From positions 2,108,001 through 2,172,000 of the forward strand of contig OZ218956.1 in NCBI GenBank assembly GCA_965112735.1: DNA of 64,000 nucleotides. The letters are read 5' to 3'. Position numbers and translations under genes: made by a program. This document shows positions 1 to 59,600 of the stretch, piece after piece; position 1 is the first letter of the stretch, and each line of letters starts with the position of its first letter. Below the pieces are notes generated by a model that saw only the letters and a program-made list of their open reading frames with translations, made no database searches and was not told where the DNA came from. The DNA comes from Phaeosaccion multiseriatum (taxonomy: Eukaryota > Protista > Ochrophyta, other classes).

Positions 1-3000
1 AATGGTGGGCTGCGGGAATTCCGTTCTCTCCGAGCGGATGGTAGGGGACGAAGGGGAGGGTTTCCGAAGCGTCATGAACATCGACATCTCCCCGAGTGTA
101 ATACGTCACATGACCGCTCGGGCCGATCGCTTGGGGCTCTCCAAGGCCCTCACTTACAAGCACCTTGACGCTTCGAAGATGGAGGGGCTTGAGGAGAGTT
201 CGTTCGCCTCGGCGGTGGATAAAGGCACCTTGGATGCCGTACTGTCGGGCAGCAGGCGGACTGCGCTTGCCATCTGTGGGGAGGTGATGCGGGTGCTCAG
301 GTGAGAGGAGGGCGGGGAGGAGGTTGGGGGGTGGGAGGAAGAGTCCTTCCTTCCTCATTGCCTCACCACCATCCGATCCAGGTGGTTGGGAGGTGGGAGA
401 GGGGGGAGGAGTAGGCGGGGGGGGCGAAGAAGAATAAGAAGGGGAGGAGGAAAAGGACAGAGGGGGGGGGCAGAAGAGAGAGCATTGTGGGTGATGAGGT
501 GGAATGTGTGTGTGTTTCATGTGTAGAGAGAGTCATCATTCTCACATCGAGCAAGCACGCAGCTACCGACGACCGAACTCTCTCCCTCCCCCCTCCCCCA
601 CCTCCCCTTAACCCATGGACACGTACACTCCACACTCACTACGCACCCACACACCGCGCCGCACCTCCTTAGGCCAGGAGGCAAGTTCATCATCATCAGC
701 GGCAATGTACCCGAGCAATACCTCTCTCTCCTGGCAGAGGGCTGTCGGCCACCATCCGACCAGGGCCAGCAGGGCAAGGGCAAGGGCAAGGGTAAGCACA
801 AGGCGCCTCTGATTTCGTCCGAGATCCTTGAGACAGACGTCGGAGACAAAGCCTACGCGTACATCATCACCAAGCCTCTCCAGACCGCCCACCAGGGGCA
901 GCAGCAGCAGCAGCAGCAGCAGCAGCAGCAGGAGGAGGGAAGTAGGGACTCCGTTGGGATGGACGAGGGGGCGAGAAGGGACAGGGAGAAGGAGGGCGGA
1001 GTAGCGAAGGAGGGGGTGAAGGCCGAGGTGAAGGGAGGAGGAGGGGGAGAGGGAGAACAAGCTCCTTCTTGTCCGAGGAGGGAGGAGGGAGGAGGCCGAA
1101 ACGAAGACGAAGACGAAGAAGATGACGACGACGACGACGACGAAGAAGATGATGACGAGGACGACGACGACGAAGAAGATGGTCTGAGAGGGTCTATGGA
1201 GCTTCGACTTCTCCCACTGCAGAGTGGTGCGAGTGACGGGAGCGACAGGGGTGCCGATCCGTCGCCTCCTGCGCATGACGGCATCGAGTCCATTCGAATC
1301 GGATATTCCTTTCCCGCAGCCTCACCACCGCCCCAGCCGGGTACGTCTGTCCTTCGTTCCTTATGTAGCCCCTCCTATGCCCCCCCCCCCTCCTTCCTTT
1401 CTTTCTTTCTTTCTTTCTTTCTTTCTTTCTTTCTTTCTTTCTTTCTTTCTTTCTTTCTTCCCTCTATCCTTCCTTCCTTCCTTCCTTCTCTCTTCCCTTG
1501 CCTCTTGTCTCCCCCCACCCATCCGCCCCCTCCCCCTTCTCCGTGTCACTCACCCGCGTACGTGTCCTCTCCTCTCACCTCACCACCCCACAAACACAGC
1601 ACAAGCGGATGCAGCGGCGACGTCCCCGGCCCAAGCCCCCCCGCTTCGCCGCTGCCGTGTAGGGCGTAATGACGACTACCTCGCTCTGTACGACCGTCCC
1701 GACGCCCCCCTTGATGACTATTGGGATGTTGAGTACCTGCCTGACTCGGCAGTGGGCCTGAGTCAAGGCGAGGTGGTGATGCGCCTGCCCAAGCAGACTA
1801 GCCGCACCCCCTTCCCTAAAGGGTTTACGGTCAAGTTTATTAGCGGCCGCAAAAGACGACAGCAGCAGCAGCAGCAGCAGCAGCAGTTGGTGATACAGCA
1901 GCAGCAGGGTGAGGCGGGAGAGGCAGGGGAGGGGGAGGGGGGCGGGCTCGAACCGCTGTCCGTGCTTGGAGTGGTGTATATCCCGCCCTCGCCCTTACCT
2001 GTCTCGGTCTCCGCATCGTCGAAGGCAGGGTCTGTTGGAGAAAGTGCCACACTGTGCACTAGTACTCCCCAAAGCACTGGCACTGGTACTGGCACTGCAC
2101 TCTTTCAGGCGCCGGATAAGATGTTTGTAGAGCAGCAGGTCAACTTGGGTCTGTATCAGCTCTGCATGTCCAAGCCGATAGGGTGGGCCGTGAGGGGTGT
2201 GAGGGTGTGGAGCGCCGCCCCGGGCTGCTGCGCGGCTGAGTTTAAGTGTTGGAGAAAGGGGAAGAGGGGGAGGAGGGCGGCAGTGGCAGGGGCAGCAGTT
2301 GGTGATGCAGAAGAAGTATCAGAAGTAGAAACAGAATCAGAATCAGAATCAGAATCGGAAGAAGAGCGGACCTACCGCAAGTACTTCCGCGTGCACAAGG
2401 CGAAGGCGGTGGACACCGAGAACGCACTGTGCACATCACAGGGAGCGGCGGATGACTGCGTCGTGGTGCGTGTGCCTTACTCGGGCAGACTCACACTGCT
2501 TGACCGCCTCGAGGGGAGGACAGGGACAGAGCTGCCGGGAGGAGAGGGGGGGGGGGAGAAGGAGCAGCAGCAGGAGGAGGAGGAGGAGGAGGAGGAGTTG
2601 GGGGAGGAGGAAGAGCTCGAGGTTGTGGGTGTGTCATGTCGCTTCTGCGGACACGCGTTGATGAAGGAGGGGAGCCTGAAGAAGACGCTGCGGCTGCCTG
2701 TGGGGAGGTTCGACGACGTGATTGAGGACATGGTGTGCTATGAGGGCCGCACGGCCACACCCATGACGGCAAGGGAAGTGCGCTTCGCGAGGAGGGGGAG
2801 GTGTCTCGTGGGGGAGTCCTTCTTGCTCATGCACAAGGTGAGGAGGGGAGGGGAGAGGGAGAGGGAGAGGGAGAGGGAGAGGGAGAGGGAGAGGGAGAGG
2901 GAGAGGGAGAGGGAGGGGAGAGGGGAGAGGGAGAGGGGGGGAGAGGGAGAGGGAGAGGGGAGAGGGGAGAGGGGAGGGGAGAGGGAGAGGGGGGGGGGGT

Positions 3001-56621: not shown

Positions 56622-59600
56622 CTACCCGACCGTGAGCTTGTCGGGGATGGCCCCCTCATCCGCCTCCATTCCGATGAGGTCCATCACCACGCTGGGCTTC
56701 TTCTCCATGCCCTCCGACATCTGGTCCAGCATCCCCTTGCAATTCCTCTTGCGCTCTGCCCATATTCCTCGCATCCTACCCCCCGGTAGCAGCAGCGGCG
56801 GCGGCGGCAGTTGGTGATGATGATGATGATGATGATGATGAGGAGGAGGAGGAGGAGGAGGGCAGGAGGATGTGCAGAGGAGACAAGAGCGAGATAATGA
56901 GGGGGGGGGGGCGAGGGAGAGGGATGCGTGGACAGATACATGGGCCATTGGTGCTGGCAAGGGCGAAGAATGACAGGCCCGAGCGTGGCGAGGACTGTCT
57001 GCCCCGTTTGCCTCATGTGTGGAAGAAATGACGGTAAGAAATTGGAGAGGTACAGAGGACCAAAAAGACTAAATACATACTTGTTGAACTCGGTCTTGGC
57101 TTTGATCATGGCCTGCGGGTCTACGTCCTTCATCCCGGCCTTGATGGCGCCGTGCCTCTCCTCCCGCGCGGACGTCTCCCTCTGCAGCCTGGACGAACAC
57201 AGCAGGGCATGGCAGGCAGTCAATTGGAGTGCGTGCGTGCGTGCGTGCGTGCGTACGTGAGGGAGTGTGTGAGTGAGCGAGTGAGTGAGTGAGGGAGTAA
57301 GTGAGTGAGTGAGTGAGTGAGTGAGAGAGTGAGTGAGTGAGAGAGTGAGTGAGTGAGGGAGTGAGCGAGCGAGTGAGTGAGGGAGGGAGTGATTGATTGA
57401 GTGGGGGCGTGAGTGAGTGAGTGAGTGAGTGAGTGAGTGAGTGAGTGTGGGGCCACGAGTTTCCGTGTTGTTGGGGGAGTAGGTGCGTGCGTGAGCGGGA
57501 GAAGGAGTGAGAGAGGGCCATTGCGCTTCTTGTACCGACAGACAGGCAGACAGATACATGCACACTTTGACTGGCCCTCCACCCTCTCGCGCGCCTTCCT
57601 GCGGATTTGTTCCCTCACATTCCCACTCTCCTATGCTATGCCTCCTGGTGTTCTCTCCCAACTTACCTCCGAGCATCTCCGCCCCCCCCTGGTGACCTTC
57701 CCACTCACTCACTAACTTATCGCTCTCCTTCCCTCCCTCCCTCCCTCCCTCCCTCCCTCCCTCCCTCCCTCCCTCACTCACTCACTCACTCAACTCATCC
57801 CCTCCCCCCCTCACCTCTCCAGCTCGGCGTCAAGCTCCTCATCTCTCAGTTGTGAAGAGAGAGTGGACACCTCTGCTTTCAAGTCCTTCAGTTCCGCCGT
57901 CACCACCCCAACCTGGTCCGCCAGCCCGTCCGCCTGAGGAAACAACAGAAGAGACAGAAGGACAATCGTTTGCACAACACGACAAAAGGCGGTAGCGGTG
58001 TACGACCGTAAGCGGGGGGGGGGGGCGCGACGCAAGCAAGGCGATAGAACAACATCATAACACAGGCACGCTTTCCGAGCCCCCTCCTCCTCTTTGGGCT
58101 CTGTCTCCACTCCTCCACCTCGCATTTGTGACTGAAATTCTCGTGCAAGAGGCAACGATGGCCTTGCTGACTGACCTGTTTCTTGAGCTTGTCGAGTTTG
58201 GCTGGAGTGATGTCCCCCAATCGCTCGGCCAGCTTGTTCTGATTGGGGTAGAACAGCTTGGCCTTGCCAAACTCCTGTGCGCTTAGGCTGCCATCAGCCA
58301 CCAAGCTGTCGAGCTGTCGTTGCACGATAGCTGGGACACACACACACACAAAAACACACAGTGAGAGAGAGAGAGAGAGGAGGGGGGGGGGAGTGAGAGA
58401 GACGTGTGAGAGAGACAGAGAAATGATACCATGCGAAAGGGGGTTCACCTTCACGCTCTTGCAGCCCGCTCTGGGGCACGCATATCTTCTCCCACTCGGG
58501 AAGAGAGAGCCCGCACCTTCGCACACAAGCCGAGAGGGAGGGGCATGGCCCACCCCCTCGTTGACCCACCAAGCCATCCCCTCCCTCCACTACCCCCCCC
58601 TCCCTCCAACCACTCACTCACTCACGTTTGGGCACGACCTTCTGTAGGTTGTCGAATATGTTCTGAATGCTATAGGGCCTGTTGACCTTCAGCATGTAGT
58701 CCCAGATCATGGTCCGCGGGGTCTTCTTCTTGGCGGGAGCAGGTGCTGGTGCTTTTGGTGCATTTGGCGCTGCTGCTGCTGGTGCTACCCCCTTGGCTTT
58801 TGGAGCTTTCTGGGCTCCCCCCCCCGCAGATGCGCCATCATTGCCACCGCCAGCAGCAGCGGCGAGAGGTGTGGAGGCCTTCTTGGCAGGCGCCTTCCCC
58901 GCCTTGGGAGTAGTCTTGGCCTGTGGGCTCTTGGCCGGGGGACTCTTGGCCTTCGGTGCTTCTCCGCCAGCAGGGGGAGGAGTAGCAGCAGCAGCAGCAG
59001 CACCCCCCATGGCCTTGGCCTTGGGGCCTCCCCCTGGAGCAGCGGCAGAGGCGGGGCTATTGCTTCTACCCGAGCTGGCGCTGTCGCCGCTGAGAGGAGG
59101 AGTGGCCAGCGCAAGGGGGGTCATTCCTGGCGCAGCAGCAGTTGCAGCAGTTGGTGAAACAGCAGCAGACGGAGGCGTCGACGCCGCTGCTGCTGCTGCC
59201 GACTTGGACAAGGACAATTTCCCTTTCTTGCCCTTCGCCTTCTTCACAGGGGGTGCAGCAGTCGAAGCAGTCCCTTCGGACGCTGCCACATCAACCGGAG
59301 ACTGCGAGTTCTTCGAAGTTTGAGAGGCGGTTTGCTTGTCGGGTTGCTTCGACTCCTCCCGCGCTCGCTTCTTGCCAGACGAGCCGCGACCTTTGGCGGG
59401 GGCAGTAGCGGCCTTGGGCGTTGCAGGGCTTCGAGGCGCCTTCCTACCACTGACGCTGCTGTTGGCCCCCTTCCTCCCCGCGACCTTCTTCTTGGGGGTC
59501 TCCTCAAAGTCGCCCTCAGAGTCATCTCCTCCTGAGGGCATCGCTTCTTCGTCTGAGTCCTCCTGATCCCCCGTGTGCTCGTGCTCGGTTTCCATTTGAA

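Follow-up and report, generated by a model that had tools for sequence, protein, structure and literature searches.

Introduction

Dispersed repeat families that are linked to microsatellites are already known, among them those of the 'mini-me'-type elements in Diptera. Similar families are generated in Lepidoptera by RTE elements with very short microsatellite 3' untranslated regions (UTRs) (Tay et al. 2010, PMC2887409). Here we compare these and other systems with a short motif, GTTGGTGATAC, that is dispersed over a stretch of 64,000 nucleotides (nt) from Phaeosaccion multiseriatum (contig OZ218956.1, positions 2,108,001 to 2,172,000; the whole stretch is called the window, and all coordinates below are counted within it). 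As in the lepidopteran families, where this is explained by copying and not by selection acting locus by locus, non-repeat sequence beside a repeat is common to many unrelated microsatellite loci. The shared flank of the lepidopteran families is between tens and hundreds of bases long and traceable to a reverse-transcriptase gene and its 3' UTR, whereas the present motif spans 12-21 nt, is enclosed within the tract by repeat on either side, and is traceable to no longer element in the window.

In Eimeria a CAG repeat acts at the DNA level and invades the exons of unrelated genes, where Ala and Gln are its commonest read-outs, Ser is less frequent, and Leu and Cys are rare (Reid et al. 2014, PMC4199364). 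The host context of the motif matches that of such genome-wide coding repeats, the homopolymeric amino acid repeats (HAARs): the CAG-type tracts in open frames of at least 300 codons in the window are read chiefly as Ala (18) and Gln (18), less as Ser (6), once as Leu and never as Cys, and low-complexity parts of proteins tolerate both. The repeats treated in that study are simple ones (CAG and a telomere-like heptamer), and it is not known to describe a complex 12-nt word in CAG tracts. The organism studied here is not a coccidian, since its best protein matches are to ochrophyte algae.

Jeffreys-type minisatellite cores are sequences common to dispersed tandem arrays. The motif resembles them in being a complex core of 10-16 nt at many dispersed repeat loci, and a second word in the window, GGATGGCAGTGGATGG, fits this type; unlike them, it interrupts a trinucleotide repeat as one lone unit in almost every case, with one small array at 35825-35924. 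Disease-associated trinucleotide repeats carry stabilising interruptions, such as CAA or CAT in CAG tracts and AGG in CGG tracts. Here too a pure CAG run is broken by inserted non-repeat sequence, which would be expected to damp slippage, but those interruptions are single variant units which arise locally by point mutation, whereas the motif is the same word at many loci and departs from four GCA units at 7 of 12 positions. Judged from its sequence, the motif would be a short dispersed repeat associated with simple repeats and outside any named family, since the defining features of each family considered were not found; the closest kinds are the microsatellite-associated and the minisatellite core families.

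Enrichment and anatomy of the motif

The 11-mer GTTGGTGATAC has nine exact copies on the two strands of the window, at 1886(+), 4317(+), 8666(-), 27396(-), 35467(-), 35846(+), 42618(-), 42984(+) and 45450(+), against 0.03 expected from dinucleotide shuffles. When one mismatch is allowed, the count rises to 22 against an expectation of 0.40, a level that none of the shuffles attained. Markov models of order 0 to 5, which were trained on the window and thus already have its repeats built in, predict 0.01-0.09 exact copies, so that within the window the enrichment over a repeat-aware background persists even at order 5 (9 versus 0.09). Under the same models the 14-mer GCAGTTGGTGATAC, which occurs 7 times, is expected at most 0.005 times. 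The enrichment is real and statistically overwhelming within the window, and chance is excluded. The nine exact copies are those given in an earlier note on this DNA, and all the near-copies that it listed are present as well (2298, 10117, 10432, 11428, 18131, 19124, 20644, 35875, 35905, 36168, 44848, 44866, 56810 and 59150); to these can be added two-mismatch relatives at 3413 and 36566 and a copy with a 3-nt insertion at 11455-11468(-). The family thus has roughly 22-26 members in the window, about one per 3 kb. The one-mismatch matches at 22899 and 25564 have no GCA shoulder and are probably chance matches, of which one or two are predicted at this search depth.

Alignment of 22 copies gives the consensus CAGCA-GTTGGTGATAC-AGCA, with high information content from -5 to +14; beyond these positions the three-base periodicity of CAG alone remains. 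Read in the GCA phase the unit is GCA GTT GGT GAT ACA GCA, which makes the motif an interruption of (GCA)n by 12 nt that shifts neither the phase of the repeat nor the reading frame. It is a real, very short dispersed repeat family with a unit of 12 nt, or 16-21 nt when the near-invariant CAGCA...AGCA(G) shoulders are counted. The differences from four GCA units include the steps TT, GG, AT and TA, which are foreign to CAG/CTG runs; repeated origin by point mutation or local inversion of a CAG run is therefore impossible, and the copies must share an origin or a constraint. Among the interruptions that separate GCA runs and are at least 8 nt long, the motif family makes up 7 of about 17. The half-words AGTTGGTG and GTGATACA are almost absent from the window outside full copies, so that the motif is not composed of a longer element's two ends.

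The orientation of the motif towards the surrounding repeat is fixed. In all 13 repeat-flanked copies the motif's own strand carries CAG-type, never CTG-type, units (two-sided binomial p ~2e-4 by our own calculation). Single mismatches are mostly transitions (9/13) and are scattered over 8 of the 11 core positions. Private variants form small subfamilies (GATGC in three copies, GTAATAC in two) and are common to neighbours, GATGC to 10117 and 11428 and GTAATAC to 19124 and 20644, with a permutation p of about 0.02-0.05 for variant sharing among neighbours. The copies at 8666 and 45450, which lie 37 kb apart on opposite strands, have a further 12-14 nt of left flank in common. Hairpin folding is significant solely for these two copies, through a CACCAAC arm (z -3.2 and -3.9), and was rejected as a general property, the canonical copies showing no significant fold. 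A telomere-like unit was likewise rejected, as there are no motif arrays apart from the 30-bp minisatellite at 35825-35924 and few TTAGGG-type words in the window, and a resemblance to U6 or U12 splice signals was set aside, the matches being partial.

Reading frames and coding context

About half of the copies lie inside long open frames. Coding status was judged from the statistics of open-frame length: the window has 26 open frames of at least 300 codons against ~2 in Markov-2 simulations, and the longest frame in 30 such simulations has 434 codons. The motif-bearing frames of 1346, 604, 576 and 465 codons are longer than any simulated frame and are therefore very likely coding. Within them the motif is read as LVI in poly-Gln, as VGD(T) in poly-Ala and, antisense, as VSPT, so that the three read-outs proposed before (QQLVIQQ, AAVGD and antisense AVSPT) hold in the translated frames. 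More than one of these can occur in a single frame. The 604-codon frame yields QQLVIQQ from copy 1886 and AAVGDA from copy 2298; the 576-codon frame yields AVSPTGG, antisense, from 42618(-) and AVGDTT from 42984(+); and the copies at 44848 and 45450 stand in different frames of the 465-codon frame. The motif is also found in introns beside splice sites (35467, 36168) and upstream of start codons (27396, 18131), which agrees with the earlier statement that it extends outside coding DNA. As the same motif is used in different frames and strands and in introns and upstream DNA, protein-level selection cannot explain it, and its nature as a DNA-level phenomenon is further borne out by the constant polarity.

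It had also been remarked that the motif is never read in the frame containing TGA. No copy is indeed found there, but the point is nearly tautological, because such a copy would break the open frame by which coding is defined, and the absence is weak evidence because ~14-18% of the CAG-type tracts in long frames are in the Ser frame. Since the copies outside CAG tracts keep a short CAGCA shoulder, it is possible that the motif could seed homopolymeric tracts.

Search for a parent element and for the motif elsewhere

The suggestion that the motif is the footprint or terminus of an element found no support: within the window it is part of no longer element, has neither terminal inverted repeats nor a target-site duplication, and shows no split half-site. 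A large repeat search of the window returned simple-repeat families only, none of its complex dispersed repeats carries the motif, and Pfam scans of 67 window open frames (four of which were scanned twice, as sub-pieces or with other bounds) revealed no transposon protein, reverse transcriptase, endonuclease or transposase. As 3'-end fragments of a non-long-terminal-repeat (non-LTR) retrotransposon or short interspersed nuclear element (SINE), the copies should show graded 5' truncation; beyond -5 there is plain CAG periodicity, and one pair shares 12-14 bases. Nor is there a 3' tail on every copy, as 27396, 35846, 35905 and 36168 lack a CAG tail; most copies have repeat on both sides. A MITE (miniature inverted-repeat transposable element), another cut-and-paste element or an excision footprint was also rejected, the 11-mer being non-palindromic with halves that are not reverse complements of each other. 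An introner-like element could be read from GTTGGTGATACAG, which is bounded by GT...AG, but this is 13 nt long and not a multiple of 3, whereas copies stand in-frame in frames of 465-1346 codons. The motif does not form a minisatellite core family either, with one array (35825-35924, period 30, 3.4 copies) and all other copies single; arrays at several dispersed loci are found for GGATGGCAGTGGATGG.

Outside the window the motif has no special status in the prokaryotic, viral and metagenomic collections or in the literature searched. The 18-mer was found 32 times, each time alone, among 596 Gb of prokaryotic genomes, which is near the chance level (~17 by our rough estimate from the size of that collection). 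The 21-mer has one match in metagenome contigs, which was rated as chance. Viral contigs gave 26 matches to the 18-mer, most of them from one phage gene family, and string matches in the literature were to unrelated PCR or loop-mediated isothermal amplification (LAMP) primers only, with no adapter among them. The phage matches (IMG/VR contigs L037-L061 except L038, L043, L044, L055 and L057) come from many metagenomes and reflect an 18-mer, GCAGTTGGTGATACAGCA, that is conserved in one gene of a low-GC (33-38%) phage group, a coincidence unrelated to the window.

The earlier note knew of no description of such a motif, and none was found in the literature searched. The claim of uniqueness is softened by the presence of GGATGGCAGTGGATGG, which is similarly dispersed in G-rich repeats of the same window, so that the main motif is not unique in kind.

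Origin of the motif

Our tentative preference is for templated copying, guided by homology, from one CAG/GCA tract to another, with purifying selection and decay by mutation thereafter. A CAG tract that is broken or stalled would anneal through its repeat units to another CAG tract that bears the interruption, or to the transcript of that tract; the annealed CAG strand would then be extended across the interruption and would re-anneal through the repeat to its own far side. Such a process would belong with ectopic gene conversion, synthesis-dependent strand annealing or template switching, on a DNA or a transcript template. The interruption being 12 nt, the reading frame is kept. Copies falling in the AGC (Ser) frame would make TGA and be lost, while those read as LVI, VGDT or antisense VSPT would stay in genes, later to decay by ordinary point mutation, and small arrays would arise by local tandem duplication. 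The fixed polarity is exactly what annealing through the repeat predicts, the additional left flank common to 8666 and 45450 suggests that the copied tracts vary in length, and the share of transitions is as expected for neutral decay. Templated copying thus accounts for the CAG shoulders, the strict polarity, the lack of an element body, the variants of neighbouring copies, the 8666/45450 flank and the transition-rich mismatches, and the second core, which occurs in G-rich tracts, suggests that this genome has such a property in general. The unit itself is unusually short and freely placed in coding sequence; how it is copied, what part selection plays and in which direction events ran we infer from one 64-kb sample.

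Several observations weigh against such copying. Six to eight copies (27396, 35467, 35846-35905, 36168, 42618 and 18131) lie outside CAG tracts, where a CAG-type shoulder of at most 5 nt offers little guiding homology, and yet their core is sharply bounded. Six copies are crowded in a 2.2-kb EF-hand gene, two of them by splice sites, and local duplication or a cis-acting role explains this crowding equally well. The statistic for variant sharing is weak, its distance threshold having been picked after the data had been seen, and the sample is 64 kb of one genome.

The copies in unique or non-CAG DNA at 27396, 35846 and 35467, which keep a sharply bounded core of 14-17 nt, would be understandable if the motif were a cis-acting site, under selection, for a protein involved in transcription, chromatin, replication or recombination, with the CAGCA...AGCAG shoulders as proto-microsatellites that later expand to CAG tracts. 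The cluster of six copies in one EF-hand gene is in line with this, and so, anecdotally, are 18131 and 27396, which sit 90-190 nt upstream of start codons and are both antisense to the gene. The core moreover contains CAGTTG, which on the opposite strand matches YAACKG, the recognition element of Myb, and after it a GATA-like TGATAC. We nevertheless consider a binding site doubtful. With about half of the copies in long open frames and one copy per ~3 kb, the coding density would be unusual for a regulatory site, and a polarity of 13/13 to the CAG strand is not required unless the site is ~21 nt long. The spread of mostly transitional mismatches over 8/11 core positions resembles decay and not position-specific tolerance, while private variants common to neighbouring copies imply copying. 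Copying of another sort would be provided by a non-LTR retrotransposon or a SINE with (CAG)n-GTTGGTGATA-(CAG)n at its 3' end; its target-primed reverse transcripts, aborted or with extreme 5' truncation, would start from CAG microsatellites and leave ultra-short products. A fixed polarity would also follow if a repeat-tailed RNA paired with a nicked repeat, the GATGC and GTAATAC variants resemble transposon subfamilies, and the lepidopteran RTE-clade elements with their very short microsatellite 3' UTRs give a precedent (PMC2887409). No copy, however, reaches upstream into shared non-repeat sequence, so the graded 5' truncation is not seen; the four copies without a CAG tail on the 3' side fit badly; and neither a reverse transcriptase, endonuclease or transposase domain in the open frames scanned nor a complex dispersed repeat containing the motif came to light in the window, all of which makes such products unlikely.

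That copies are short, near-identical and linked to repeats that are hard to assemble might raise the suspicion of an assembly, adapter or library artefact placed in repeat tracts. This is very improbable given that 13 copies have single substitutions and others two substitutions or an indel, that copies occur on both strands and deep in long open frames without breaking them, and that one has been amplified in a 30-bp minisatellite; the literature strings are those of unrelated PCR/LAMP primers and not of adapters, and the 18-mer is near the chance level among the prokaryotic genomes (32 single occurrences). Least credible of all is that the motif arose by chance, or by convergent selection on the proteins in favour of a hydrophobic break (LVI/LVM) within poly-Gln coiled coils. 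All four copies in the 1346-codon frame do stand in the Gln frame with the pattern Q-[LV]-V-[IMA]. The same nucleotides are read VGD(T/A) and antisense VSPT elsewhere, however, even within one open frame, copies are present in introns and upstream DNA, and synonymous alternatives are unused, so that this kind of selection is effectively refuted by the use of frames and strands, chance being excluded by the shuffle and Markov expectations.

Beyond templated copying of a general kind, we allow a real though minor chance that an undescribed process writes one defined 12-nt cassette into CAG microsatellites genome-wide, coding exons included. Its agent could be a mobile unit of ultra-short length or else a repair pathway dedicated to it, guided by repeats and copying a fixed template, and unrelated proteins would recurrently gain the same four residues (LVIQ, VGDT or VSPT); the cassette might in addition start homopolymeric amino-acid tracts or make them more stable. 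If the motif occurs genome-wide at about one per 3 kb, it would be among the shortest dispersed repeat families known and a rare case of one complex DNA word inserted in-frame into many unrelated coding sequences. It would then be a natural tracer of sequence exchange between microsatellites by ectopic conversion, template switching or RNA-templated repair, and would help to trace the birth, interruption and stabilisation of homopolymeric amino-acid tracts, which are hard to follow in pure repeats. If it is a binding site, it points to an abundant and hitherto unrecognised DNA-binding activity in a poorly studied algal/protist lineage. Either way, microsatellite markers or gene models that span CAG tracts in this genome can be expected to cross-match at many loci.

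The individual copies

On the left side of the window, copy 1886..1896(+) is exact and lies within (CAG)9...(CAG)3 in the 604-codon open frame at 1188-2999, which is also home to 2298..2308(+), a one-mismatch copy with the GATGC variant. A two-mismatch relative, GATGGTGAAAC, follows at 3413..3423(+) with the shoulders GCA...AGCAG. The exact copy at 4317..4327(+) is preceded by (CAG)9-TTACAAGAG-CAGCA and has a partial second copy, GGTGATACA, 24 nt downstream (4343-4352). At 8666..8676(-) the copy is exact, and its left flank, CAACACCAACAGCA, common to copy 45450, pairs with GTTGGTG as a 7-bp hairpin arm.

The 1346-codon open frame contains three one-mismatch copies on the minus strand, 10117..10127 (GATGC, read QQLVMLQQ), 10432..10442 (GGTGGTGATAC, read QVVIRQQ) and 11428..11438 (GATGC, read QQLVMQH). 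Close by, at 11455..11468(-), stands the degenerate copy with a 3-nt insertion (GGTGGTG-GCC-ATAC), read QQVVAIQQ. The match at 18131..18141(-) has one mismatch (GATAG) and no GCA shoulder; it lies ~90 nt upstream of the ATG at 18227, antisense to the gene, and its membership is uncertain. The neighbours 19124..19134(-) and 20644..20654(+) each have one mismatch, the GTAATAC variant, the first being read antisense as SVLPTAA in a 430-codon plus-strand frame and the second as QQLVIQLQ. Copy 27396..27406(-) is exact and stands in unique non-repeat DNA with a CAGCA shoulder only, ~190 nt upstream of the ATG at 27588 and antisense to the gene.

Several copies belong to the EF-hand gene region. The exact copy at 35467..35477(-) is intronic and starts 9 nt past the 5' splice site CAG|GTGAGG of the minus-strand gene. 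The minisatellite at 35825..35924(+), made of 3.4 units of 30 bp amid CACCA repeats in an intron or spacer, carries an exact copy at 35846, one with two mismatches at 35875 and one with a single mismatch at 35905. Copy 36168..36178(-), with one mismatch (ATTGG...), ends 10 nt ahead of the 3' splice site (...CATACTCACAG|ATCCGC) of an EF-hand exon, and a two-mismatch relative, CAGCA-GTTGGTGCTCC, is found antisense inside the upstream EF-hand exon at 36566..36576(+).

In the 576-codon plus-strand frame, which belongs to a DnaJ-domain gene, the exact copy at 42618..42628(-) lies between (CCA)n and AGCAAC, and the exact copy at 42984..42994(+) stands before AACAA(CAG)10. The 465-codon frame has degenerate matches of uncertain membership at 44848..44876(+), GTTGGTGGTAC at 44848 and GTTGGTGACGC at 44866, in an Ala-type frame, and the exact copy 45450..45460(+), read QQLVIQQQ. 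A two-mismatch relative at 56810..56820(+) marks the junction of (GCG/GCA)n and (GAT)n, as GCA-GTTGGTGAT-GATGAT..., and the last copy, 59150..59160(+), has one mismatch (GAAAC), lies in a CAG tract and is read antisense as AAVSPTAA in a 439-codon minus-strand frame ending in a Hop2/TBPIP winged-helix exon.

Other repeats and genes in the window

The second short core, GGATGGCAGTGGATGG, is dispersed in G-rich repeats at seven or eight loci, among them 7873-7927(+), 20993-21149(-), 21289-21303(+), 36418-36452(-), 43666-43734(-) and 51022-51036(-). Some loci carry it in arrays, whose period is 10 or 29 depending on the locus, and others as single copies, and it behaves as a textbook-like minisatellite core family. 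Three of its loci start 6-12 nt past a 5' splice-site-like AG|GTG(A/G)G, so that it may be the mark of intron starts that form a related family. Three dispersed loci (7329, 34338 and 43686) have a third short word, GGGTGTCAGGAC, within minisatellites. The sole complex dispersed repeat of the window is a MITE-like palindromic element at 13145-13396, 29253-29406 and 56298-56482, with GCTATCCGCTATCGCCGGCGCCAGCCGG-type and GGCCGATAGCGCGCTATC-type blocks and internal inverted repeats; it is unrelated to the main motif and looks quite unlike it.

The window has 60% G+C, and its CpG observed/expected ratio of 0.62 is a marked deficit at such a composition. It is extremely rich in microsatellites and minisatellites, with 70 pure CAG/CTG tracts of at least three units in 64 kb. 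The DNA is eukaryotic and contains introns; Pfam domains (RGS, DnaJ, MatE, Hop2/TBPIP, HECT_2, EF-hand, TIM, cullin, RING and DUF5522) break off at the ends of open frames. In an exhaustive HMMER search the RGS open frame gave domain-level matches at 38-40% identity, and all those that are named belong to brown algae or Chrysoparadoxa (Ectocarpus, Scytosiphon, Cladosiphon, Nemacystus, Undaria, Laminaria, Choristocarpus and Chrysoparadoxa). The single-exon gene at 27588-28607 has solely environmental homologues, of ~50% identity, on contigs of 1-3 kb that carry neither CAG tracts nor the motif. A protein search with the MatE exon gave no match, nor did a word-based search with the HECT_2 piece, which was swamped by low-complexity words; a Pfam scan of the region upstream of HECT_2, with E values up to 10, gave nothing useful, an exact look-up of one window protein returned no record, and no Rfam families or tRNAs were found in the window or around copy 27396.

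The EF-hand (centrin/calmodulin-like) gene or gene pair at 34419-36620(-) has several exons and canonical AG|GTGAG...CAG| introns, and within its 2.2 kb an array of the second core accompanies the six main-motif copies. At 14856-15067 there are 10.1 repeats, with 100% identity, of a 21-bp unit, CACAGTGGAGGGTAGGACGGA, which has AGTGGAGGGTAG in common with an EF-hand intron start at ~36455. The triosephosphate isomerase gene at 46787-48980(-) is split by introns; its best matches among solved structures, judged from their PDB codes, are presumably bacterial (Thermotoga, Bacillus, E. coli) and not eukaryotic cytosolic. Very long simple repeats were observed at 22072-22400, (CCT)110, at 35031-35227, (GGA)66, and at 36775-37281, (GGGTGA)84, and the first two form inverted arms of 250-290 nt that lie 12.6 kb apart.

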